Sequence record: MK568540.2
Length of the DNA: 64,000 nucleotides
Reading direction: 5' to 3' (one strand)
Below, piece after piece: positions 16,059 through 64,000 of this stretch (position 1 is the stretch's first letter; each line of letters begins with the position of its first letter). Both the position numbers and the translations under genes were made by a program. The notes under the pieces were generated by a model. The model did not search any database. It saw nothing but the letters and a program-made list of their open reading frames with translations, and had not been told where the DNA came from.

Positions 16059-16985
16059 TTACTCGTCTAGCTCTAGGTCAGCTAGTAGTGCGTCTAGCTC
16101 GTCATCGACAGAATCAGTCACTGGCTCTTGTGAAGCAGGAGTGTCGTCAGTGTCGATAGTTGCGCTTGGTTTAGCAACTGTACGAGGTGCATTTGCTTGA
16201 GCAGGAGCACCAGTGTTCAGTTGAGCTTCAAGATTTTGAGCAGCCGTAGATGCTTTAGACTGAGCAGCGCCAGTCACTTGAAGAAAACGCTTCTGAAGGT
16301 CAGCTTCAGATTTAAACGCAGACGGTGCAATGATTGCGTTTAGGTCGTGCATTTGGTCCCAGACTTCTTTCAGTTTAGCTTCGTCACCGCCGTATAGCTC
16401 AGTGCTTGGGCCGAATTTAGAGTCGTCGTAGTTAGGGAAACCAGATACTTTCTTAGCTTTCAAGCTGAAGTTAGCACCATCGAATACACAAGTCACGTCC
16501 ATGCCCGGTACACCTAGATCTTCATCTGCTTGAGCAGCTTGAGTGATCTTGTCAAGAATTTTCTTACCGAAACGGTATTTAAAAACTTTGCCTTCATTTT
16601 CTGGTGCAGCTTCATCTTTGATTACAACGATGTTAGCCCAGTAAGAAAGAGTACGCTTGCGTTTACGTGCAATGTTTTGGTTATCTTCGTTTTCAGTTTT
16701 CCAAAGCTCGCCGTTAGCTTGGCAGCATGGACATGGAAGATCGATAGTCGAAGGACAGTTTTCGATGTACCAGTTACCGTTTTCTTTGAAACCGTGTGTG
16801 AAGATTTTTACAAATGGTAGGTCGTCTTCGCCTTTAGCAGGCAGGAAGCGAATCACCGCAGAACCATTACCAAGCTTGTCAGTAGAAAGTTTCCACTCGT
16901 CAGCATTGTCGAATGACTTTTTGCTTGACATTTGCTCTAGTTTTTCTTGAAGTTTTGCTGGAGATTTGCGTTTGAACATAGACAT
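16059..16985 (-). CDS. 32: single-stranded DNA-binding protein
   Basis: MFKRKSP, EWKL..DK.GNGSAVIRFLP, HGFK..G.WYIENC, acidic C-terminus. Confidence 0.98.
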   Translation of the reverse strand: MSMFKRKSPAKLQEKLEQMSSKKSFDNADEWKLSTDKLGNGSAVIRFLPAKGEDDLPFVKIFTHGFKENGNWYIENCPSTIDLPCPCCQANGELWKTENEDNQNIARKRKRTLSYWANIVVIKDEAAPENEGKVFKYRFGKKILDKITQAAQADEDLGVPGMDVTCVFDGANFSLKAKKVSGFPNYDDSKFGPSTELYGGDEAKLKEVWDQMHDLNAIIAPSAFKSEADLQKRFLQVTGAAQSKASTAAQNLEAQLNTGAPAQANAPRTVAKPSATIDTDDTPASQEPVTDSVDDELDALLADLELDE

Positions 16986-17048
16986 ATTGTATTTTACCTT
17001 GTATTTTATAGTATGATATAGTATCGTATAGTGTGTTATTGTATTTTA
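16986..17048 (-). promoter_or_regulatory. putative gp32 autogenous translational operator
   Basis: AU-rich unstructured leader with TAAAATACAA x3 and ACTATA repeats, by analogy with T4 gene 32 autoregulation. Confidence 0.5.
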
Positions 17049-17689
17049 CTTTGATTTTTTATTTGAATAAACATTTCTTTAGCAAGATCTTCGTCGATTT
17101 TCAGCAACTTATCGTATGCTAAAGCTCGTGTCTTGAACTCGTGCCAGAAGATATCGTCTCCGTAATCTTTGTCGATTACAGGTACGAAGTTCAATAATCT
17201 ATTCAGAATTACGAACGTCTCAATTGAGATAGTATTTCGTAACACGAGTTGCATTATAACGGGATGCCCTTCGCCTCTAAACAAATCTTTGAATTTTTTA
17301 TTCTCTCTATTTATAAGAGTAAAAATCGAAAGTAGTTCATTTTTGTAGTGTTGACTGTAAATTTCCATAAATCCCGTATGTTTCAACCAGAATTCATGAG
17401 CGTCAGCACCTGCAATCTCATAAGAAATCGCATTGGGGTTCGCTGCTAAGTTACTAACAAGCAACTGATAGCAATCATTCAATGTTAGCCGTTTGGCTAG
17501 CCGTTCAAAAAACACCTTATCTGAACGCTTCTCGAACGCAGATCTAGGTGTTTTCATTCCGAGTTTATACTTGGAGATGTCGTACTTTCCGCCCATATGC
17601 GCCTTTACAGCACAATAAACACGAAATACGCTATACCCATTGACCCAAGTCCGAGGCAGAACCAAATCGACTTCTAATAGTCTTTTCAT
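17036..17689 (-). CDS. 59: helicase loader
   Basis: NGYSVF..Y...K.H..GKYD..KY, F.KRSDK.FF, ETFVIL; gene order 33-59-32. Confidence 0.93.
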   Translation of the reverse strand: MKRLLEVDLVLPRTWVNGYSVFRVYCAVKAHMGGKYDISKYKLGMKTPRSAFEKRSDKVFFERLAKRLTLNDCYQLLVSNLAANPNAISYEIAGADAHEFWLKHTGFMEIYSQHYKNELLSIFTLINRENKKFKDLFRGEGHPVIMQLVLRNTISIETFVILNRLLNFVPVIDKDYGDDIFWHEFKTRALAYDKLLKIDEDLAKEMFIQIKNQSKIQ

Positions 17690-19291: not shown

Positions 19292-22200
19292 ATGTCAGAA
19301 TTCCGCAGAGCATTTCGTGCGTCAGGTCTTGATGCAAGTGGTCAGAATGTCATTAACGTAGCAGACCCACGAGCAAATGAATTGTTCGACGGTATTAACC
19401 AAGGCTACTTTATTGAAGAGAACACTGTTCAAGAGTATGACCCAACACGAGATCACTATAAAGTAGACTTTATCGTTGAGTTCAATCAACGTCTATACAA
19501 AAACATTACCGAAATCAATGCACCTGAACCTTTTGACTCGCAGAAGTGGCAGAAAATGCGTACCGACCCTGAATGGGAAGATACTGATTCATCGGTAGGC
19601 GCAAACGTCGGTGACTTCTTGTTGTTAACAGCAAGCTCGGCAATCACTATTACACTGCCTGAAACACCATTAACAGGTGACACAGTTACAATCAAAGACG
19701 GTAAAGGCGTTCTTACAACTTACCCTTGTACGATTGCAGCAGCGGGCGGCTTGACGATTCAACATTACGGCATTGACGGTTCAATTGAGTCTAAACCGAG
19801 TATTTCATTCAATACCCCTAACAGCACTATATTCTTAGTGTACAACGGTATTGCATGGACATATCAGATCAATCAAGAGTTATACAATACGTATATTGAC
19901 GACAGTCACCCAACTCAACAGGGTGGGTACTTATCAACTGGTGGTTATTTCACTAACGTTGGCGAGACAGTCACATATGACGGTTCAGTTAAGAAAATTG
20001 CAATTTCTGTACCACTGAACCCGAACGTGGGCGATACAATTCATCTTAAAGATGTTGCGTATCTTGAGAATCAAACGTCGATTCAAATCGGTGTGAACCC
20101 GACTGCTACGGGTCAGGTTATTCAAGACCCTATTTCAGGCGAACGTAGTTCTGTTATCAGTCTTGATACTATCGGCGGCGCTGATATCACATTTATCGAT
20201 GATAACGGTACTGGCGTATGGGTAATCACAATCGCGAACAACCCGCATTTATGGAACTATGTCGGGGATTCAAGCGCGGTTGAATTGAAGCCTCGTTCTC
20301 GTTACGCTATCGAAATCGCAGATGCTGTTCCTGCAATGACGATCACACTACCAGAAAAACCAGCCGATGGTGACTGGATTGAGATCTCACACAACAAAAC
20401 AGCTCATAAGAAAGTAACGATTCAAGTTCACCCGAATTTCGGTGATGATGACCCAGGTCACGGCCCCGATGAATACAAAGTATTCTTGGACTTTGAAACA
20501 TATCGTTATCAAAAATACCGTCATTACGTTGATTTCGTTCCATTCTTCGTTGAATCATTCGAAATTAGTGATTATGACAGCGGTTATTCACTAGTTCTAT
20601 ACTACGACGCGAGTCGTAAAGTATGGTCGTTCGGTAACATCGCGACTCGTATCGATATCGCTGATGAACTATACCGTAAACGCCCGGGTATCGTGCCATT
20701 AGCTGACCCAACGGAAGCTCTAGCACACGGGATTGAATATGCGCACCCTGAAGATGCAGCAGACCCTTGGGCTGATCAAAACCCACTGAAAGACCACGTA
20801 ATCACGGTAGAGACGCTTGACGCTCGTCGTGCAGGTGAACAGCAAGTTGGTATGGCTCGTGTTGCTACTCTTGGAACTGATGAAGCTCTTGAAGAATCGC
20901 GTTCTGGTACGTTTGTTCGTTACCCAGATACAAACTTCAGACATGATCTGTTCATAACACCACGTAGTTTGAATGCGCGTACAGCAACTGAAACACGTCG
21001 CGGTGTAGTTGAAATCGCAACTCAAAACGAGACGCGAAGCACAACTAACGATGTTCAAGTTCTAACACCGATGAAATTCCACGCTGCACAAGCTGAAGAA
21101 GATCTAACAGGTGTTGCAAAACTAGTCGAAGCGTCGAACAACATCAATGCTGGTGGTATTGTTACATCAACAGCGAATATGCGTTCAGACCGTTCAGTAA
21201 ATGGTCTTGACAATACAGTATATGATAAAACTGATCATCTGCGTATCGTAACGCCAAAAATGCTTGATGAGTATCGTGCTACAGAGAATCAACCTGGTAC
21301 ATTATGGGTTGCTAAGAGCAGTGAACTCCGCATCAACGACTCAACAGTTGATAACGCGATCATCACGCCTAAGAAATTAGCAGCGTGGAAAGCAAGCTCA
21401 ACGGTTCGTGGTATTGCTCGTTCTGCCACACAGTCTGAAGCAAATGCAACAACAGGAACTGGTGAATCGTGGACAACAGTCTTCATCACACCAGAAACGT
21501 TGAATAGCAGAACAGCAACTGAATCACGTCGTGGTGTTGCTGAAATCGCAACTCAAACTGAAGTTGACTCAGGGACAGACGATACTCGTATTGTTTCACC
21601 ACTTAAACTGAAGACATGGCTTGATCGTGACCATTTCGTGACGGCAGGAACAGATGGTCTATCGCATAATGGTACAGTGTGGGGCGACGTTACATTCAGC
21701 ATCGCGTCAGCGACTGAAACACAACGTGGTACACTACAAGTTGCGACTCAAGTAGAAGCGAATGCTCAAACTGGTGCGCTTGATGATGTAATCATCACAC
21801 CACAGAAGTTAAATGCGCGTCGTGCTACAGAAACGCAAACCGGTATCGTGCGTCTTGCGACTCAAGCTGAAGTCGAAGCAGCGACAGCTAGTAATGAAAT
21901 TGTTGTTACTCCGAGTGATTTGCTACACTGGACTCGTTACTCTGACAGCTCACGTGCAAATGAAAGTCGTTATGGTAACGTACAAATCGCAACACCAGCA
22001 GAAACATTTGTTGGTAACAGTACAGACGGTTCAACACAAGCGTATACGTCGTACTTGCGTGTTCCATATGCAGTTTCACCTTACGGTCTGCATTATGCAT
22101 TGCGCAACTACTTACCGCTAAACGCTAAAGCTGATGACTCAGAATTACTAGATGGCTTGAACAGTACACAATTTGCACGTCGTGACATCGACCAAACAAT

Positions 22201-25704: not shown

Positions 25705-25724
25705 AGCCCTTCGGGGCTTTTTTT
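25705..25724 (+). terminator. intrinsic terminator after gene 35
   Basis: AGCCC-TTCG-GGGCT followed by a T-run. Confidence 0.9.
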
Positions 25725-25744
25725 ATACGCGAAGCGAAAACGGT

Positions 25745-25810
25745 AAGAGGCGGAAAAATTCCGTCTCATCTTAGTAGTATTAGTGGTTTTAGTGATATTA
25801 GAAGTATTAG
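25745..25810 (+). repeat. 66-bp dispersed repeat, copy 1 (hairpin plus 9-nt periodic TTAG array)
   Basis: Exact reverse complement of 53610-53675. Confidence 0.95.
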
Positions 25811-25820
25811 AGGGATTAGT

Positions 25821-25850
25821 GTTTAAGCAACCAATGATGAAATGTATACT
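25821..25850 (+). promoter_or_regulatory. promoter for uvsY
   Basis: GTTTAA-18-TATACT, followed by GAGG RBS. Confidence 0.65.
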
Positions 25851-41034: not shown

Positions 41035-41526
41035 TTAAAGCCCCATTTGTTGACGCTTCTTCATCGACTTCTTACGCAATTTTTTTGCTTTACGATCTGC
41101 ACTAGTGCCTTTCATACGCTTGCGTGTTTTAGCCGCTTTTCGCGCTGTTTTTTGTCTCTTCGATTTACTTAGACCAGTTGTTTGAGTCGCTTTTCGCGCT
41201 CTGGTTTTTCGGTCTTTGCGCTTCGTAATTAAACTACCGCCAGCTTTTTTGTTAGCAATAGAAACTTGCTTAACTAGCTTTTCGGAAAGTTCGAATTTTT
41301 CACACGCTTCATCGATTGATAACCCGTCTTCAAGAGAACTTAGCACGTCAAGTACAACTTCAACTTCGTTCGTGATGTCTTTATTGCTGTGAACGCCGAT
41401 ATCTTCAGCTTCAGCAAACGCTTTGATAGTGTCGCTGATATCTTGGCGATCTAACTGACCACCAAGAACTGCTTCTACCAAATCTTCGACGATTTTCTCT
41501 TGAACGGCTTCGGAAATGAACTTCAT
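41035..41526 (-). CDS. 68: prohead core protein
   Basis: Acidic N-half, Lys/Arg-rich C-half (R...ARKA.KT...RK..KSMKKR..MGL); synteny. Confidence 0.9.
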   Translation of the reverse strand: MKFISEAVQEKIVEDLVEAVLGGQLDRQDISDTIKAFAEAEDIGVHSNKDITNEVEVVLDVLSSLEDGLSIDEACEKFELSEKLVKQVSIANKKAGGSLITKRKDRKTRARKATQTTGLSKSKRQKTARKAAKTRKRMKGTSADRKAKKLRKKSMKKRQQMGL

Positions 41527-41694
41527 TTAGTCCTCCTGATTGATTTCACCGTCTACTGTAATTGAACGACCAAGTTCTTGCTTCATGTCGTCAATACGCG
41601 CCGCTACACGCTGACCGATTTCTTGGCGAAATTGAGATTCAAAATCTGCCAATTTACCGTCTCGTGCCGCTGCTACCATTGTTTCTAAGCTCAT
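41527..41694 (-). CDS. 67: prohead core protein (55 aa), not in ORF track
   Basis: MSLETMVAAARDGKLADFESQF...; located between genes 20 and 68. Confidence 0.8.
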   Translation of the reverse strand: MSLETMVAAARDGKLADFESQFRQEIGQRVAARIDDMKQELGRSITVDGEINQED

Positions 41695-43849: not shown

Positions 43850-45865
43850 TTAGCCGATGATTTCTGCAAAGTCAGCGTCAGTTGACGTTGCTACGAAGTT
43901 CAGCGTAATGTAGTTGATTGACTTAGCAGGTTTCACGTAGATACTTGCTACAAACTCGTTTCTGTCGATGACAGACCCTGGGTTGTTTGTCTCATCACAT
44001 ACAACACGGAAATCGTAAATACCGCCTAGATCTTGAATGTTAGTCAAGTAAGCGTCGATTTCCGATTTGAAGCTTGAGCGTGTGAACTCATCGTTCAATT
44101 CGAATAGACGATACTTAGCAGCATCTGAGATCGCTTTCTTCAGCAAGTTGAACAGACGACGCACGTTAATGCGATCAAATGCACTCGCTTGCTGTGTAGC
44201 AGTCTTATCACCGTATAGTACGAAGCCTTGACCTGCAAAGCCCACTACAGGGTTAATACCGATTTGATATAGCGCATCACGGTGAGCACGACGTAGATCA
44301 ACTGCTAGACGGTTTACGCCCTTGATTTGACCACGATTGAAGCCCGCTGGTGACATCCAAGGTTGAGAAACTTGGTCAGTGTAAGCACATAGACCTGCAA
44401 TATCACCCGCTAGAGGAACCCAACGATTGCGATCTGAGTACTTGTCGTACTGATACTTATAGTTACCGTCAACCACTGCATAAGTCGTGCTTACGTTTAG
44501 ATTGTCAGTTACAGGTTGACCGTTAGTCGGGTCGATACCCGTGCGCCAGCCTTGAATATTCGCTACTGCAACATGCGCTTGTTTGTTGATTACGTGAACA
44601 CCCGGTGGCGATACGAAAACAACACAGTCTTGACGTACATTACCAACTGAGTCAATCGCGTATTTCTGAACAGTCGATGCAATTGATAGCTCTTCTGCCG
44701 CAGCATTACCCGCAATGATCAAGTTTGTGTAAAGCACTTCTGGGTCAGATAGCATATCTAGACCAAGCATCCAGTCGTCTGCGCCAGCGTTAGCGTCGTA
44801 ACCACCACTAAGATTGTATGCACCTGAGCCAGTATTCCAACCCTCTGCTATCGCAGTGATGTACGCAGAACCGCTATTTTCAAAGTACTCGTCGATGAAA
44901 ATAGATTGACCGTTCACGTCTTTGTCACCTGGGTTCGTAGAAACGATGAACGCTTCTTCAACTTCACCAGATACGCGAACAATTACAGCGTATTGGTTGC
45001 TGTTTGCAGGGCCGAAAGTGAAGTAACTAGCTAGGTTGATTGAACGAGTACCACCATCTGGGTAGATTGGTAGATCGATGTCACCTAGTGTATGACCAGC
45101 CGCGAATGCAAATGCAGTCTGATAGTCAGCGTAGTTAATCACTTCAACAGAAATGTTGTCACCGTAGCTACCAACATAACGTGCAGCAATACGAGAGAAA
45201 CCTTGCTTCTCGATTAGATCAGCATATTTCAGTGCACCGCCTTCAGTTTCAATCTCTGTTAACGCGCCTGTTGACAATTCGATATTAGGGAAGTATACTG
45301 AACCAGTATCGATAATTTCAATCGCAGAAAGTGCAATATCACCTTGAGTTGGTTGTAGTGTAACTGTACCCACGCCCGGGTAGTTCCCGTCAGCTTTAGC
45401 AGCCGCAACGATCTCTGCCGAAGGCAAGAAAATCTTAGTTGCTGCGTTGTTGTTACCCGCATCTACTTCAAGTACTTTACCTTTTTCAGTAAGCGGACCA
45501 ACACCTGAGTAAGTAATTGTGATTTCATCACCAACAACACAGCCGTTTGATGCACCTAGCGTGTATTCAACAGCGTTGTATAATGCAGTCGCGTTCTGAG
45601 CACTTGACTCATCACAGATACGCACTAGACGTAGATCGTTACCATACTTCAAGAAGTTGTTCGCAGTCATGAATGATGCTGCGGTATAGTCGTTTGGACG
45701 ACCGAAAATAGTAACCAAGTCGGACTCTGAAGTTACTTGAGTGATGCTGTATGCTGGACCCCACTCAAATTTCCCCACCATAGCAGCACGCCCTGTAGAC
45801 GCACGACCGATAGCACTTGCAAGGTTAATCTCTTTATTTTCGACACCCGGAGATAAAAGAGTCAT
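43850..45865 (-). CDS. 18: tail sheath protein
   Basis: MTLLSPGVE.KE, GKFEWGPA, PWMSPAG, DRINVRRLF, NN....IDRNEFVA. Confidence 0.99.
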   Translation of the reverse strand: MTLLSPGVENKEINLASAIGRASTGRAAMVGKFEWGPAYSITQVTSESDLVTIFGRPNDYTAASFMTANNFLKYGNDLRLVRICDESSAQNATALYNAVEYTLGASNGCVVGDEITITYSGVGPLTEKGKVLEVDAGNNNAATKIFLPSAEIVAAAKADGNYPGVGTVTLQPTQGDIALSAIEIIDTGSVYFPNIELSTGALTEIETEGGALKYADLIEKQGFSRIAARYVGSYGDNISVEVINYADYQTAFAFAAGHTLGDIDLPIYPDGGTRSINLASYFTFGPANSNQYAVIVRVSGEVEEAFIVSTNPGDKDVNGQSIFIDEYFENSGSAYITAIAEGWNTGSGAYNLSGGYDANAGADDWMLGLDMLSDPEVLYTNLIIAGNAAAEELSIASTVQKYAIDSVGNVRQDCVVFVSPPGVHVINKQAHVAVANIQGWRTGIDPTNGQPVTDNLNVSTTYAVVDGNYKYQYDKYSDRNRWVPLAGDIAGLCAYTDQVSQPWMSPAGFNRGQIKGVNRLAVDLRRAHRDALYQIGINPVVGFAGQGFVLYGDKTATQQASAFDRINVRRLFNLLKKAISDAAKYRLFELNDEFTRSSFKSEIDAYLTNIQDLGGIYDFRVVCDETNNPGSVIDRNEFVASIYVKPAKSINYITLNFVATSTDADFAEIIG

Positions 45866-53510: not shown

Positions 53511-53518
53511 TATTTATA
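53511..53518 (-). promoter_or_regulatory. late promoter for wac
   Basis: Perfect TATAAATA. Confidence 0.75.
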
Positions 53519-53609
53519 GCAATACAAAGAAACAGAGAGGGAATGTCTTTATGTGTTAATAATAGCAAGCATATTCATGGTATTAAACACGTATTTAATA
53601 CTAATCATA

Positions 53610-53675
53610 CTAATACTTCTAATATCACTAAAACCACTAATACTACTAAGATGAGACGGAATTTTTCCGCCTCTT
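53610..53675 (-). repeat. 66-bp dispersed repeat, copy 2
   Basis: Exact reverse complement of 25745-25810; TTAG period continues toward 53590. Confidence 0.95.
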
Positions 53676-53699
53676 GCCATTTCTTCGCTGCGCTAATAC

Positions 53700-53727
53700 A
53701 AAAAAGGGTGAGAAATCAATCTCACCC
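53700..53727 (-). terminator. intrinsic terminator after gene 12
   Basis: GGGTGAGA-TTGATT-TCTCACCC-TTTTTT. Confidence 0.88.
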
Positions 53728-53767: not shown

Positions 53768-55195
53768 TTATGCAGTTCTTTCCCACATGTAAACAGTATA
53801 GTATGGCTGTACGTTATTATGTGGTTGACCACCACCTTCTGGTGATGAGTAATACAAGTAGTTGTCGTTATCAGTGCGACCTGAACCTGGGTTGCTTCTA
53901 CCATATTCGTATGCAACTCCAAACCCTAGTCCGTTGCCACCGTAAGTCCAACGATCACCCCAACCCGCGTGTTTGTGAGTTGGCATTGTTTCTTCAGTTA
54001 AGATAACTTCGTATTCACCACCTGTTTGTCTTACGTTGAATGTTCTACCCCCATGTGTACCTTCAGATACAAGCACGCGACCTTCTGCAATTCTAGACCA
54101 TGTTCCGCCGAATAGCGTAGCTGGTGATGTAGATTCAAGTGACATGTAAATAGCACCAACAGGGTACATATTCAACATAGCTGATGATTCAATCAGACCA
54201 TTTGTCATTAACTGAGTACCACTTACAGATTGAACATCGTCGATTTTCAATGTACCAGTTACTGTCCCGCCTGAAACCCCAATCTTTTCATTATTCAACT
54301 TATAACCCATTGCAGCACTTAGTGCTTGAGTCGCGTCGTTTGTTGTTAGATTGTTTGCAAGTTTCGCAACACCAACACGTGAGCTAGTCGCAGTGAATAA
54401 ATCTAATGTACCGACTGTGACTGCATGGTCATTAGATGTACGCGCATTTGCAACTGTTGAGTTCGGTAGATAGAAACCTGCCTTTCTCGTAGTTGTCGCT
54501 GTGCGTTCATTGAATCGATACGGTGAAATTGCTAGATTGTTTTCTGATGCTGATGTGCTGTTTACTTCAGTTGCATTTGCTAATCGAATCAACCCTTTCG
54601 TCGTTTCTGTAGCATCTGATGCGGTAGTATTCGCCCACACGTCAAGCATTTCCTTAACTCGCTGTGGGGTCATAGCCACACTATTAGACAATGTGCCTGT
54701 TGTCGTTGCTTGTGCATATGTCGCTAGCCGTACAGCACCCGGCGAAGATTCAGTTGCATAGAAACGAGTATTCAACGCGTAGTTCAATGTTTTAAGCGTG
54801 AATGCATGTTTCTGTGCTTCTTCTACTGCGGATGTCGGGTCAATGTTATCAATCGTGCTGTTTGTAATCAGCTTCACAAAACCGTATTGAAGTTCTGTTG
54901 CAGTCGCGTGATTTTCCATCCAATAATTTAATGCAGATGGTGTCACCGCGCTTGTGTTATTAAGCTCATCTGCGACTGCTGCATTATCACTTAACAATGT
55001 AATACCCGCGACAGATGTTGATGCTATAGGGTAATCGGGTAATGGTTGAAGTGCATGAGCTTGTACAAGCTCAAGACACGTTTGGAGATCGTTATTACCC
55101 CCAGTAAGACCATCAAAGGAAGTACCTTCGACTTCAACTGTAACCGTACCCGCATCGTCAATCACGTGATTGAAAATTTGAGTTCCTTTGCTCAT
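53768..55195 (-). CDS. 12: short tail fibre
   Basis: ATE...G...LAT repeats, YPVGAIYMS collar domain, MPTHKH metal site, HNNVQPY..VY.W.RT. Confidence 0.85.
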   Translation of the reverse strand: MSKGTQIFNHVIDDAGTVTVEVEGTSFDGLTGGNNDLQTCLELVQAHALQPLPDYPIASTSVAGITLLSDNAAVADELNNTSAVTPSALNYWMENHATATELQYGFVKLITNSTIDNIDPTSAVEEAQKHAFTLKTLNYALNTRFYATESSPGAVRLATYAQATTTGTLSNSVAMTPQRVKEMLDVWANTTASDATETTKGLIRLANATEVNSTSASENNLAISPYRFNERTATTTRKAGFYLPNSTVANARTSNDHAVTVGTLDLFTATSSRVGVAKLANNLTTNDATQALSAAMGYKLNNEKIGVSGGTVTGTLKIDDVQSVSGTQLMTNGLIESSAMLNMYPVGAIYMSLESTSPATLFGGTWSRIAEGRVLVSEGTHGGRTFNVRQTGGEYEVILTEETMPTHKHAGWGDRWTYGGNGLGFGVAYEYGRSNPGSGRTDNDNYLYYSSPEGGGQPHNNVQPYYTVYMWERTA

Positions 55196-56730
55196 TTAAC
55201 TCGTCTCCAAATGTAAACTGGGTAGTATGGCATCATATTCTCATGCGGCTCATTACCACCAACTGCTTCGTTGTAATACATGTAATTATCACGATCAGTA
55301 GATTTCGAACCGGGATTATTACGCGAACCTGTTATACCGAATCTCCAGTAACTGACAGTATTATATTCATCACACGTATATGTTACACCATACGGGCTTC
55401 GATGAGTTTCGTAGCGAATACACCCCTCGCGTGAGCCTGTATATGCTTCACCCCAACCTGCGTGTTGGTGTTGTGGTAAATTACTCTCGTATAACTGAAC
55501 ACGGTCGATGTCACTGAACGAACCCGCTGCGTAATATCTGCGAGTGAACCCATCATCACCGATACCCTGCCCCATCATAGTCCGACCTGCTCTCATCTTA
55601 TACCATACGCCACCGAAAATCTCATTCGGGTCAACTGATGAAGTACAGTGAAAAATACTACCCACAGGGCGCCCTTCGAGACCGATCTTCGCGTCTAATT
55701 GGTTGTTTGGGAACATTTCTCTCTGCTCTCGCACAGTTGTGTAATATGTTCCACCATAGCTGCTCTGCTTTTGACGAGAAATGATGTTTGTGTAAATGTT
55801 GTCGCACTTCAAAACACCAGTAATTGTACCACCGTCTGGGCCCAATAGTGTATTCAAATCAACACCAAGTGCAGCACTTGTGGCTTTCGTTGAGTCGTTT
55901 ACATACGAGCTTGGTAGTTCAAAGAACCCGTGCTTAGTCGGTGTCGCTATTAGATTGTCAATTGTACCGGGAGTTATAGCATATTCATCTGAATCGCTTG
56001 CATTACGGTCATAGTTGTTCTGTGTTAATTTGAATGCACCACGCTTAGATGTCGTCGCTTTAACGTAATTAAGACCTTTAACTGTAATTGCAATCGAACC
56101 GTCTGATTTATACCCGTCTCGTTCTGCTACAGTACGAAGCACGCCCGTGTATGTTTCTGTCGCTTGAGCCCAAGGGTTTGGTATCTCTGCTTTAATTAAG
56201 TTCCACGTTCTAAGTGGAGAAATGAATCGATCAGGGTTATATGCTAAAGTTTCGCTTAGATTTGCAAACTCAGCAAAACCTTGTGATTCGTTTGTTGTGT
56301 CATCTGCTAGTGCATTACGAGTCGTCATCATTTCATTTAGACGGCGATATGACAGCAAACGACTTGCATCTGATGACGAATATGTTCTTGTCAAATCAGT
56401 ATTACGCAATTCTTGTAGATTACCTAACTGAGTACTGGTTGCTGGTGACACGAACTGATCAACCCCGTCTAGTGACGCTGGTGTGATTACAGTTAATAAG
56501 TCGTCAAGTGCATTAGCTTCTGTTTGAGTTGCGTACTCAACAATACCAGCCTCAGTCGTTGTCGCATACGGAAGTGACGGAAGTGGTGCTAATGCGCTAT
56601 CGTCAAATAGCTCCATTATACTCTGCACATCACCGCCTGACTCAAACGCTGAACCAGGCGATGTGAAGGGCTGTAGGTAAACATATTGCGCTGCATCACT
56701 AGCGTGCGTGAATATGTTTGTTCCTGACAT
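55192..56730 (-). CDS. second gp12-like short tail fibre
   Basis: Same architecture: H.SD.A.YV, AT...G...AT repeats, PVGSIF collar, LPQHQH, HENMMPY..VY.W.R. Confidence 0.8.
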   Translation of the reverse strand: MSGTNIFTHASDAAQYVYLQPFTSPGSAFESGGDVQSIMELFDDSALAPLPSLPYATTTEAGIVEYATQTEANALDDLLTVITPASLDGVDQFVSPATSTQLGNLQELRNTDLTRTYSSSDASRLLSYRRLNEMMTTRNALADDTTNESQGFAEFANLSETLAYNPDRFISPLRTWNLIKAEIPNPWAQATETYTGVLRTVAERDGYKSDGSIAITVKGLNYVKATTSKRGAFKLTQNNYDRNASDSDEYAITPGTIDNLIATPTKHGFFELPSSYVNDSTKATSAALGVDLNTLLGPDGGTITGVLKCDNIYTNIISRQKQSSYGGTYYTTVREQREMFPNNQLDAKIGLEGRPVGSIFHCTSSVDPNEIFGGVWYKMRAGRTMMGQGIGDDGFTRRYYAAGSFSDIDRVQLYESNLPQHQHAGWGEAYTGSREGCIRYETHRSPYGVTYTCDEYNTVSYWRFGITGSRNNPGSKSTDRDNYMYYNEAVGGNEPHENMMPYYPVYIWRRVK

Positions 56731-61713: not shown

Positions 61714-64000
61714 CTATTTGTTTTTGAGTCGGCGTTACTGGGTCATATGGGTTGCCAACGTTGTCTTTCAATCTGTAATCAGAATCTTCGTACATATCTG
61801 AAATACTCGTCGATGCTGCTGACCAGTCAAACATAAATGCAGGAGTTCGTTCGTATGCTGTCATTCCCCAATATACCGACCCGTTTGCGTCTGCTGATTG
61901 AACTTTCGCAGTTGGGTTGTAATTGGGATTCAGAACACGTTTCTTACCGCCCCATTCATCGTTGATATCACCCGTGTCTGTTTCTATATATCGTTGCTCG
62001 TCGATAGCTGAATACTCATCTAAAGCAATCACACGATCATTAGCCCAGTAGTTGTTGTAGTCGATGATTGTAATACCCTGTGTATTAGTCAATCGATCTT
62101 GAATCGCATGATCAAGCGGGTCTTCTAGTGCTAACGGGTGTGGCTTCAATTGAAGTTCACCGAACGAGTTGTAAATTCTATCGTCGTTACCATCAAGCAA
62201 TGAAGTTTCTTCAGTGAAGTTATTCCCTATACCGTTGTCATAGCGAATCAATCTGTATGAATCTACAATCGTTTCGTGGTGGTTGACTGAGATACCGTGA
62301 TTGATCAATACTGTCAGCAACGTAATACCTAAGAACCCAAACCCAATTGGGTGTACAAATCGAATTACATCATCTTTGTACTGACTAAGCTGAATCTCAG
62401 AACGAATCTTCATAACGTAGTATGATTTGCTTCGATCAAGAAATTCATTTGAATCGTAGTCGATTCGTTCACCTTGTACGCGAGTAATCGCAGTTGCAGT
62501 GAATTCCAGACCGTCGATTTCTAACGTGTCGCCGATGTTCAACTCACCGATTAAGTTGTTCAAAGTCAATTTCCAGTAACGTTTACCTTCAATGTAATGA
62601 CGGTCAACATATGTCACGTCTGCGTTGCCTGTCTCTGAATAAATTCTACGACCTACCACATCATCGGTTACGTCATTTGAGTTAACAACGATTGAATATT
62701 CAAACGTGTTAAGCGATTCTATTTCAACTTCAACATCTTCGTTGTACAGTAACTTGAACAAGAACTTGTATGAGTCTAAAATACCTTTAGTGCTGTAAAA
62801 ATCTGCACGTCGTGCCAAGAAAAATTTAACAACTGCATCACGTTTCTCTGGCTCTAGAATACGATTTCGCTCGTATACTAATTTGTGTAGATACTCAGTG
62901 TAATGGTCGTCAAGTGGGTTTTTGCTGTTAAGCAAGTTATACACGTTATTATAAGCCGTACCATCACCTTTACTGATGAAATCTAAGTAGTGCTTTGCAA
63001 AACTCTTGTAAAACCCGTCTGCATCGAGATAATTCTCTGGCATCATCTTGTAAATCAATGGTGTCAGAGTCGGGTCGAGCATACTTGTTGGGTCTTCTTC
63101 AGGCGGCTCGATAATTACTGGAGAATAATTAGACAAACTAGCCGTGATTACACGACGCTCAGGCGACCAGCGAATTGGCGCTGTGATATCAACGCGGTAT
63201 GGAAACTTGTAGTAACCTATTACCTTGTTGTCGTTCGCGCTGTGAATGATCGCACCTGCTGCATAACCATTAAACCCGAAAATCGATAGATTAGGAGCTT
63301 CCAGTTTGTATTCACCTTCGTCAAATGTCTCTTTCCATTTATATTCGTCTAGATCTTCAAAATCGCTTCTGAAAATTGACTCTTTCTTGTAGTACATGAT
63401 TTCATTTGCCCAAGATTTCCAATCACGTGTTTCAGCACGCTGCATCCAGTTGAAATGCGCGGATCCGTAATAATCTTGCGGCTTGTAGTACCAATCATCA
63501 CCGTCTTTCGTCGCGATAATCTGTGTCATCGGCTTAACGTATGTTGTAAAGAACGGTTTAGTGAACATACGAACAGCTTCGTCAACTTCATCGTTGTCTG
63601 AAACTAGATACGGGTCATCTATTGTACCGTAGTTATCACCCGCAGTTGAGTGGAAATTACCAGGTGCACCGCTAGACTCTTGACGATTGTCGTAAGCTGG
63701 GTTGCCTTCTTCACCGTAGTTCTTTGTTAGATCGTGACCTACAATCAAATGAGTGTTGTCACGTGAAATAACTGAACGTTCGTTTAGAAGTTCGCGTTCT
63801 TCTTCAATGTTTCCGTATACACGTTCCCATGTCAAGCCAGTGTAACCAATAACGATACCATCTCTCAATGTCGCTGTGCGATTTAGTCGATAAACACCGC
63901 GAATCTCATTCGGGTCAGATGTACCGATTCGTTTACCGTTCTCGTCATGCTCCCACTCACCTATGACTAGCGCGAACATATTTCCGTCTTGATAATCGAG
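61706..64000 (-). CDS. 7: baseplate wedge initiator, 3' part (frame open to window end)
   Basis: P.L.PLI.KM.P..YL, DFYS.KG...SYKFLFKLLYNE.V, RFVHP.GFGF.GITLLT, L.DNVGNP.DP..PTQ. Confidence 0.93.
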   Translation of the reverse strand, partial: LDYQDGNMFALVIGEWEHDENGKRIGTSDPNEIRGVYRLNRTATLRDGIVIGYTGLTWERVYGNIEEERELLNERSVISRDNTHLIVGHDLTKNYGEEGNPAYDNRQESSGAPGNFHSTAGDNYGTIDDPYLVSDNDEVDEAVRMFTKPFFTTYVKPMTQIIATKDGDDWYYKPQDYYGSAHFNWMQRAETRDWKSWANEIMYYKKESIFRSDFEDLDEYKWKETFDEGEYKLEAPNLSIFGFNGYAAGAIIHSANDNKVIGYYKFPYRVDITAPIRWSPERRVITASLSNYSPVIIEPPEEDPTSMLDPTLTPLIYKMMPENYLDADGFYKSFAKHYLDFISKGDGTAYNNVYNLLNSKNPLDDHYTEYLHKLVYERNRILEPEKRDAVVKFFLARRADFYSTKGILDSYKFLFKLLYNEDVEVEIESLNTFEYSIVVNSNDVTDDVVGRRIYSETGNADVTYVDRHYIEGKRYWKLTLNNLIGELNIGDTLEIDGLEFTATAITRVQGERIDYDSNEFLDRSKSYYVMKIRSEIQLSQYKDDVIRFVHPIGFGFLGITLLTVLINHGISVNHHETIVDSYRLIRYDNGIGNNFTEETSLLDGNDDRIYNSFGELQLKPHPLALEDPLDHAIQDRLTNTQGITIIDYNNYWANDRVIALDEYSAIDEQRYIETDTGDINDEWGGKKRVLNPNYNPTAKVQSADANGSVYWGMTAYERTPAFMFDWSAASTSISDMYEDSDYRLKDNVGNPYDPVTPTQKQIGE

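Follow-up and report, generated by a model that had tools for sequence, protein, structure and literature searches.

What is the role of a short sequence that occurs twice, in exactly the same form and on opposite strands, within one stretch of phage DNA? The stretch analyzed here (the window, 64,000 nucleotides [nt] long) is identical over 64 kb to positions 62001–126000 of Vibrio phage Va3 (MK568540.2), a Schizotequatrovirus, that is, a KVP40-like T4-type phage, with a genome of 247,567 bp. The sequence at 25745–25810 is the exact reverse complement of the one at 53610–53675 (66 nt), and the similarity reaches arms of 89 nt (25738–25826 and 53594–53682, 92% identity). Each copy contains a hairpin followed by six TTAG tetranucleotides phased at 9 nt, a description given in an initial annotation made from the letters alone and borne out by sequence comparison, RNA folding, and Tandem Repeats Finder. 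That annotation took the pair for two oppositely oriented origins or loci; they are instead two members of a six-copy family located at fixed junctions of the genome. As judged from sequence comparison, the element is genuine, conserved, and of unusual architecture, and the question becomes whether it works as DNA or as RNA, and in which process.

Six Copies at Fixed Junctions

Within the window, a series of four TTAG spaced by 9 nt is present only at these two places, and none of 100 shuffles contains it. Beyond the window, a BLAST search against phage genomes matched the element region in 51 phage records, all of Vibrio phages, with six match places in nearly every genome-length record among the matches listed. 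A profile made from the six Va3 copies found exactly six in each of the complete genomes of Va3, VS1, and D480, the latter being the most divergent relative in the profile search, and also six each in the loci of KVP40 and VH7D. These five phages provide the set of 30 copies (six each, named c1 to c6) used below. Every one of the 30 occupies one of the same six junctions, in the sense orientation of its neighboring genes, and the circular order and spacing of the six copies are alike in the three complete genomes. In Va3, copy 1 lies between the gene of a gp35-like tail-fiber connector and uvsY, and copy 2, on the opposite strand, between a gp12-like fiber gene and the fibritin gene (wac). The remaining four are at the junction of gp3 and gene 1 (dNMP kinase), upstream of the glutaredoxin gene, across the start of the record, and between two small genes in a variable region. 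Three of the six junctions (35/uvsY, 12/wac, and 3/1) separate conserved core genes.

The limits of this distribution are sharp. About 50 records of Vibrio phages have a UvsY with at least 60% identity, beyond which identity drops to less than 40%; together with the BLAST records, this gap indicates that the element is present throughout the isolated KVP40-like clade and only there. In a scan of IMG/VR for the core pattern, the genuine copies were only those of KVP40 and VH7D, other matches lacking the hairpin, and in metagenomes 3 of 23 matches were genuine environmental copies of the same kind. Among bacterial and archaeal genomes (one genome per bacterial species), the 100 core-pattern matches were all perfect tandem 9-mers without hairpin or linker; hence, the scan gives neither a copy in a host nor a hint of a host factor. 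A looser IMG/VR scan, for five TTAG with the 9-nt period, was uninformative, with more than 120 matches, many of them on giant-virus contigs. A string search of the literature with the element sequence found no earlier description.

The bacterial matches are a curiosity of their own. Perfect tandem TTAGTRRTW 9-mers, with 3–12 units, occur in about 100 bacterial species of many phyla, a frequency that was unexpected. A few of these arrays lie directly after terminator-like hairpins, e.g., in the SAR86 contig L182. They do not seem to be related to the phage element.

Anatomy of the Element and Its Flanks

Read from 5′ to 3′, a typical locus has an intrinsic terminator, often a AGCGAAGCG motif, a 9-bp hairpin with an A-rich loop, an invariant ATC, and 5–7 TTAG boxes, the unit consensus being TTAG-T-R-R-T-A. 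The register is strictly of 9 nt, without a single indel in the 30 copies. The ATC and the first five TTAG are invariant in all of them, and the sixth TTAG is present in most. The hairpin core motif is found only at the six sites. The AGCGAAGCG motif is present in about 70% of the copies, being absent from all c4 and from c5 of KVP40 and VS1. At c5 and c6 it encodes the final codons (KSEA) of the upstream open reading frames (ORFs), which are unrelated: paralogy between them was considered and rejected, the common KSEA ends deriving from the motif of the element.

Copy 1, on the plus strand, directly follows the intrinsic terminator of the gp35-like tail-fiber gene (25705–25724; 5-bp G+C stem, TTCG loop, seven T), which was read directly and as a predicted hairpin, the terminator scan having listed this stem on the minus strand only. 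The purine-rich motif, here CGCGAAGCGAAA, occupies 25728–25739. The hairpin (25747–25767, GAGGCGGAA/AAA/TTCCGTCTC) is predicted by RNA folding to have a 9-bp stem with one G·T wobble and an AAA loop, and the ATC linker with six TTAGNNNNN units extends over 25768–25824, with TTAG starting at 25771, 25780, 25789, 25798, 25807, and 25816. The −35 of the candidate σ70-type promoter of uvsY (25822–25850, TTTAAG-17-TATACT) overlaps the sixth repeat. Copy 2, on the minus strand, has the same succession: the terminator of the gp12-like short tail fiber gene (53700–53727, an 8-bp stem followed by a T run), the upstream motif AGCGCAGCGAAG (53683–53694), a hairpin identical to that of copy 1 (53653–53673), the linker with six TTAGNNNNN units (53596–53652), and a σ70-like promoter (53559–53586, TTAATA-16-TATTAT with TG) conserved in the five phages. 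The T4-type late promoter of fibritin, TATAAATA (53511–53518, minus strand), was read directly and is equally conserved in the five. Tandem Repeats Finder describes both arrays with a period of 9, 5.7 copies, 76% matches, and no indels.

The initial annotation had thus correctly placed both copies after a terminator and along local transcription, with a marked strand bias, and had correctly noted that copy 1 adjoins the uvsY promoter. Its promoter after each copy holds well for copy 2, where the scan detects it, and less firmly for copy 1, where the promoter is weaker, falls under the scan threshold, and was identified by eye, although it is conserved in KVP40, VS1, VH7D, and D480. In the family as a whole, Va3 has a terminator ahead of four of its six copies and D480 ahead of five, c4 lying immediately next to its terminator. 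A conserved but locus-specific σ70-type promoter follows c1–c5, its −35 starting 4–31 nt downstream of the first base of the sixth repeat unit, with a −35-like TGTTTAA or TTGACA located 16–17 nt from the −10. The exception is c6, which has neither terminator nor sense promoter, and whose fifth repeat is, in all five phages, the Shine-Dalgarno sequence (TTAGGAGTA) of a lipoprotein gene.

Two trivial identities were rejected. The hairpin of the element is not an intrinsic terminator, as its stem is followed by ATCTTAG and not by a T run, the scan does not call it, and separate upstream hairpins are the terminators. Nor is the array a simple repeat of the variable-number tandem repeat type, because its units are 75%–76% alike around an invariant 4-nt core and number 5–7 without indels in 30 copies.

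The promoters following c1–c5 may be of use in themselves. Those at 25822–25850 and 53559–53586 of the window, at 41640–41668 of L003, and at 45016–45043 of L001 are of an early type, with an extended −35, TGTTTAA or TGTTGACA. The paper on the KVP40 genome reportedly could not identify features of early- or middle-mode transcription, and a literature search found no transcriptome of a KVP40-like phage. A search with the shared extended −35 might help to find the early promoters of the clade.

A pair of related metagenome contigs, L170 (3600–3745, minus strand) and L167, carries the element at a junction whose flanks resemble none of the six known loci. There, the AGCGAAGCG motif opens a 28-codon ORF ending at the first TAG of the array, and an ORF of about 44 codons begins at the array end. 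The stem of the L167 copy is a hybrid of the two hairpin versions described below, and is partly broken.

The element might itself be a small gene, coding for a Leu/Val-rich peptide in the TTA frame or for a trans-acting small RNA. The automatic annotation of D480 does set small "hypothetical protein" coding sequences (CDSs) over several copies (L142 23368–23529 and other loci; e.g., VPHD480_0031, 0302, 0404, and 0430), and one frame of the array is open. Yet, none of 150 units has another Leu codon in place of TTA, and copies differ in the frame of the array with respect to the upstream motif; a peptide was rejected on these grounds. As for the small RNA, also among the proposals of the initial annotation, there is no promoter before the element, four of the six copies lie right behind strong terminators (immediately so at c4), and the best Rfam match, at 26.9 bits (E = 0.84), is below the gathering score of 60. 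A small gene of either kind is thus extremely unlikely, and the D480 CDSs are almost certainly spurious. The element is therefore a source of false small ORFs for gene callers.

Purifying Selection and Gene Conversion

The exact identity of the two copies had been taken to imply either selection or gene conversion, and both turn out to be at work. Core identity averages 0.88 when one locus is compared across genomes, 0.82 between different loci of one genome, and 0.81 between different loci of different genomes. Because same-locus copies are more alike than copies within a genome, the family is maintained mainly by purifying selection at each locus, with occasional conversion, and strong concerted evolution is ruled out as the cause of conservation. 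Between Va3 and D480, the cores are 0.79–0.90 identical and the flanks 0.50–0.82. The initial annotation is supported in treating the element as a non-coding, cis-acting locus that is conserved by selection. Three repeats distinguish c1 from c2 in the sister phage VH7D; on this comparison, the exact identity of c1 and c2 in Va3 is the result of recent gene conversion.

If conversion occurs, could the element be no more than a recombination substrate? The order stem-loop, A+T-rich tract, −35/−10, and Shine-Dalgarno resembles that of the PeSLs of nt-1 and KVP40, and a terminator–promoter cassette of that kind could be kept alike by recombination without any function of its own. The conversion of c1 and c2, the occurrence of one hairpin version at differing loci in Va3 and KVP40, and the hybrid stem of L167 are all compatible with this. 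However, such a cassette would explain neither the greater likeness of same-locus copies nor the invariant phased TTAG and the exclusion of C discussed below. There are exactly six copies at fixed junctions, instead of many in hyperplastic regions beside indels, and the downstream promoters are locus-specific and lie outside the repeat. We therefore consider a mere cassette quite improbable.

Evidence for a Single-Stranded Working Form

The composition of the array is its most peculiar trait. Among 1,620 array bases in the 30 copies, only 11 are C. Position 5 of the unit is T in 126 cases, A in 39, G in 15, and C in none; position 8 is T in 115, A in 50, G in 14, and C in 1. The T-rich spacer positions thus vary to A or G and almost never to C, although C is the expected product of transition. 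One strand has G but practically no C, and the other has C but no G, so that neither can fold upon itself. Accordingly, the RNAalifold consensus leaves the array unpaired while retaining a 6-bp core of the hairpin. A fold within the array was considered, since UUAG is self-complementary through G·U and the c1 array alone folds weakly, but no such fold survives in the alignment consensus.

The hairpin, on the contrary, is maintained as a paired structure. In the alignment, 91% of its cells are paired, with G·U wobbles in 14 of 26 cases and A·C in none. Such wobbles fit only the sense strand; they weaken the stem on the antisense strand. The stem of c4 in VS1 even has tandem G·U/U·G wobbles. Two adjacent pairs are swapped from G–C to C–G in a CCC/GGG version of the hairpin, found at c3 and c5 of Va3 but only at c3 of KVP40. 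The covariation anticipated for the stem is therefore visible in the swaps and wobbles, but it probably reflects a single event spread by conversion, and is supportive rather than decisive; a template-switch mutation of the type known in T4 could also yield such swaps. Conservation peaks beside the hairpin and decays in the 3′ direction. Taken together, composition and hairpin point to a working form that is single-stranded, in which a protein would read TTAG every 9 nt after nucleation at the hairpin.

These data bear on two readings in which the sense strand would not be the active form. In the first, a phage or host regulator, e.g., of the ribbon-helix-helix family, would coat the TTAG boxes in duplex DNA and control the adjacent early promoters of uvsY, wac, dNMP kinase, and glutaredoxin. 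Five of the six copies lie 4–31 bp upstream of a conserved σ70-type promoter, several of these with a weak −35, and tandem 4-nt boxes with short spacers do build the operators of omega (7 bp), ParG (8 bp), and MetJ (8 bp). The 9-bp register would rotate the sites round the helix, so that at any spacing some protomer might face RNA polymerase. However, the exclusion of C at each spacer position of one strand, with T changing to A or G, is a constraint on a single strand and not on groove reading, and two hairpin versions with swapped G–C pairs in one genome argue for pairing and against sequence reading of an inverted repeat. In addition, the spacing between array and promoter varies between loci and c6 has no promoter. 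A duplex operator is thus unlikely.

In the second, the element would insulate upstream genes from antisense transcription: an RNA with C but no G, followed by a hairpin, would be a rut-like entry site for Rho. The antisense array RNA is indeed fully unpaired over 63 nt, contains C and lacks G, and the orientation of the element relative to genes is fixed. Still, the conserved antisense box is mostly A-C-U-A-A, whereas Rho prefers pyrimidine–C dinucleotides, a strict register is unnecessary for Rho, and no convergent promoters were identified. This makes an antisense insulator very unlikely.

DNA or RNA? Duplex Stability and Genome Placement

If the sense strand is the one that matters, it remains to choose between its DNA and RNA forms. 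The arrays are among the 0.01%–0.6% least stable 54-bp duplex windows of the genome (0.5% for copy 1 and 0.01% for copy 2), and each is the least stable point within 500 bp on either side, to within 4 bp. The six sites are also evenly dispersed: the minimum gap is about 26 kb of 248 kb, which six random points would equal with P ~ 0.007, and their density is one per 41 kb, to be compared with at least five origins in the 169 kb of T4.

We tentatively favor, as possible though still improbable, a reading in which the element serves six dispersed replication origins as a strand-specific module for unwinding and for the loading of protein. The G+C hairpin with its A-rich loop would be a clamp or nucleation point, and the 5–7 TTAG boxes would lie in an unfoldable tract that melts more easily than any other DNA within hundreds of bases. 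Opening of the tract could be aided by negative supercoiling behind the adjacent early promoter firing outward or, at c6, by transcription through the tract; an outward promoter beside an unwinding element helps to open origins, as does gidA at oriC of Escherichia coli. The C-free strand would then offer its phased boxes to an oligomeric binder of single-stranded DNA, either an initiator or a helicase loader, which would spread 5′ to 3′ from the hairpin and establish a fork co-directional with transcription. The declining conservation away from the hairpin is what one would expect from nucleation followed by spreading. We infer that the element binds a protein, that it does so as DNA instead of RNA, and that it takes part in replication; what is observed is its structure, conservation, and distribution, together with the strand bias, the even spacing, and the low stability of the duplex. 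DNA is preferred because four or five of the six copies lie in the gap between a terminator and a promoter, where little RNA is expected, because the arrays are extreme unwinding elements, and because the six sites are evenly dispersed at a density near that of T4 origins. An origin or a helicase-loading site had already been suggested in the initial annotation; this role is retained as the leading reading, but on account of duplex instability and even spacing and not on the grounds given there. In its fullest form, which is more doubtful, KVP40-like phages would have six sequence-defined origins sharing one motif, a clamp hairpin with a 9-nt-phased TTAG tract read as single-stranded DNA by a putative oligomeric initiator or helicase loader, as a phage analog of the DnaA-trio system.

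Several observations weigh against a role at origins. T4 origins have no common motif, and at oriF and oriG the unwinding element is downstream of the promoter, whereas here it is upstream at five of the six loci. The spacing statistic is a single observation, as gene order is common to the whole clade. GC skew does not change at the six sites more than it would at random. Pfam searches, a limited scan of nine proteins (eight flanking copies, and Va3_215) and ten ORFs of the replication module, found no candidate for an initiator, a loader, or an RNA-binding protein; a DUF2828/DUF7788 protein, called "RNA-binding" in the D480 annotation, gave only weak matches, to designed repeat proteins in PDB. 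The copies at c6 (in all five phages) and in L170 lie inside transcription units, with a ribosome binding site (RBS) or a start codon in the last repeats, resembling an RNA operator. The tandem wobbles of c4 in VS1 would be better tolerated by RNA than by DNA. Finally, a pure unwinding element would need neither the invariant G nor the spacer purines.

Some of these points are shared by the reading in which the element acts as RNA. The hairpin would nucleate, and the unstructured UUAG tract would carry, an oligomeric or cooperative RNA-binding protein, in a manner similar to the gene 32 operator; alternatively, the array would be a series of RNase E sites that punctuate transcripts and leave a protective 3′ hairpin. 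That all six loci are sense to transcription, that the only wobbles are G·U, and that the array is unpaired in the consensus fold would all be natural for an RNA. At c6 the fifth repeat as a Shine-Dalgarno sequence is followed by a start codon, without terminator or promoter nearby, in L170 a start codon is at the array end, and the ORFs upstream of c5 and c6 extend into the element. The architecture is documented for the gp32 operator, and 118 of 150 repeat junctions fit R-N-cut-W-U-U, the consensus of RNase E. Yet, four of the six copies (five in D480) are behind strong terminators and five of the six precede the promoter of the downstream gene, so that most neighboring transcripts would lack the element. 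The distance to the start codon is not conserved, even genomic spacing is not explained, and UUAG is absent from the gene 32 leader and from the initiation regions that RegA targets; in Va3 those of 44, 45, rIIB, and regA have no TTAG, and an identity with the RegA operator was thus rejected. In its RNase E form, this reading also meets the difficulty that the enzyme could do without the strict register of 9 nt and without the invariance of A and G. We regard an RNA platform as the main rival, likewise possible but improbable, and only slightly less so than the origin reading is it credible.

The choice of replication start sites in T4-type phages is still poorly defined, and a short invariant element in six copies gives a concrete handle on it. 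If the origin reading is correct, this would be the first origin motif shared within any T4-type phage. Whether it is an origin module, an RNA operator, or a site of transcription control, the element should lead to a novel activity that binds single strands in a sequence-specific manner, and to a further level of genome organization in this group of large vibriophages, several of which were isolated for phage therapy in aquaculture.

Other Repeats and Genes of Va3

The window contains other repeats, within genes. The gene of a gp34-like proximal tail fiber (20951–21866, plus strand) has three copies of a 76-nt coding repeat, with 64%–80% identity and 531 and 309 nt apart, of which a 32-nt stretch matches, in inverted orientation, a gp12-like gene at 56517–56548. 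Two adjacent paralogous genes for gp12-like tail collar fibers (53768–55195 and 55192–56730, minus strand) overlap by 4 nt. At an annotated prohead core protein gene (41125–41210) there is a 32-nt direct repeat with 81% identity, spaced by 54 nt. Outside the window, Va3 has an annotated 7-deazaguanine/queuosine gene cluster (L001 4810–9568; QueC, QueF-like, GTP cyclohydrolase I, and PTPS-like) and many tRNAs.

Comparison with Known Systems

T4 has at least five origins without a common motif, and the role of the oriE repeats is undefined (T4 review). At oriF and oriG, a MotA-dependent middle promoter is followed downstream by an A+T-rich unwinding element, which is essential but without sequence requirement, and the nontemplate strand is single-stranded. 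The resemblance is in the dispersion of origins at similar density, the nearby promoter, the location of one of them at uvsY, as copy 1, and the easily melted A+T-rich segment. In contrast, the Va3 loci have a conserved hairpin and phased TTAG placed upstream of a σ70-type promoter at five of the six loci, and no MotA box (TGCTT) was seen near the promoters after c1–c5 in the sequences read. As the least stable duplex within 500 bp is the array itself, membership of the oriF/oriG type was rejected, and the parallel drawn in the initial annotation with the R-loop origin at uvsY fails because the geometry is reversed.

Its other parallel, with oriE, fares no better. There are likenesses, namely evenly spaced short direct repeats and an origin that depends on an early promoter. 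However, the repeats of oriE have a period of 24 nt, lie inside the coding region of gene 5, and are antisense to repEA/repEB, whereas the TTAG arrays are intergenic, with a 9-nt period and an invariant 4-nt core. None of the six elements is near gene 5, where the only repeats in Va3 are coding repeats of the gene, and they are thus not oriE iterons. A tblastn search with T4 RepEB gave 625 records, Vibrio not being among the genera listed. It may be noted that the oriE repeats of T4 (L181 2903–3070, corresponding to T4 79402–79569) and those of gene 5 in Va3 (L003 32061–32225) are the same kind of coding repeat, and that the oriE "iterons" may simply be the coding periodicity of gene 5.

The PeSLs described in nt-1 and KVP40 consist of a stem-loop, an A+T-rich tract, a σ70-like promoter, and a Shine-Dalgarno sequence, and are recombination-prone (Arbiol 2010; Comeau 2014, PMC4122927). 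Their order of terminator and promoter is found at c1–c5, but the element has 60–90 nt of extra conserved sequence between stem-loop and −35, with its additional hairpin and phased TTAG tract; the copies are six and fixed, their promoters are locus-specific, and c6 has none. PeSLs are preferentially located in hyperplastic regions and tied to indels (PMC4122927). By this description, the six copies, located at the same junctions in five phages and, in three cases, between core genes, are of another kind.

Ribbon-helix-helix operators, such as those of omega (7 bp), ParG (8 bp), and MetJ (8 bp), are arrays of 4–7-nt boxes with a nonhelical period, upstream of promoters and bound cooperatively, which is close to the layout of c1–c5. 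They differ in being read as duplex, without exclusion of C from one strand, whereas the composition and hairpin of the element point to a single strand.

A further parallel is bacterial. The basal unwinding system of bacterial origins, said to have been defined by Richardson et al. in 2016, reportedly consists of a DnaA box, a G+C cluster, DnaA-trios, and A+T-rich DNA, with TAG as the trio consensus from 5′ to 3′. Near the phage copies there is no conserved DnaA-box-like 9-mer, the seven matches with one mismatch being scattered and locus-specific, only every third triplet is TAG, and the context is that of a phage and not of oriC. What both have in common is a G+C element followed by a strand-specific repeat of short period, which in the bacterial system directs the filament of the initiator to a single strand where the duplex melts readily.

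The T4 gene 32 operator, present in a single copy, is a 5′ pseudoknot followed by unstructured UUAA(A) repeats, along which the protein spreads 5′ to 3′ toward the RBS. The leader of gene 32 in Va3 has no UUAG array or element hairpin. It has its own peculiarities: the approximately 60 nt before the start (window 16983–17115, minus strand) are almost free of G, with the 9-mers AAAATACAA three times and ATACTATA twice, unlike the TTAG arrays, and these repeats may be the version of the gp32 autoregulatory operator in this clade. The element differs from the T4 operator in having a simple hairpin, in reaching the RBS only at c6 (and in L170), and in being separated from the gene by a promoter at c1–c5. 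Nevertheless, the combination of a structured nucleation site with an unstructured tract of short repeats is the same, and for the way the element might work, be it as RNA or as single-stranded DNA, the gene 32 operator is the best model.

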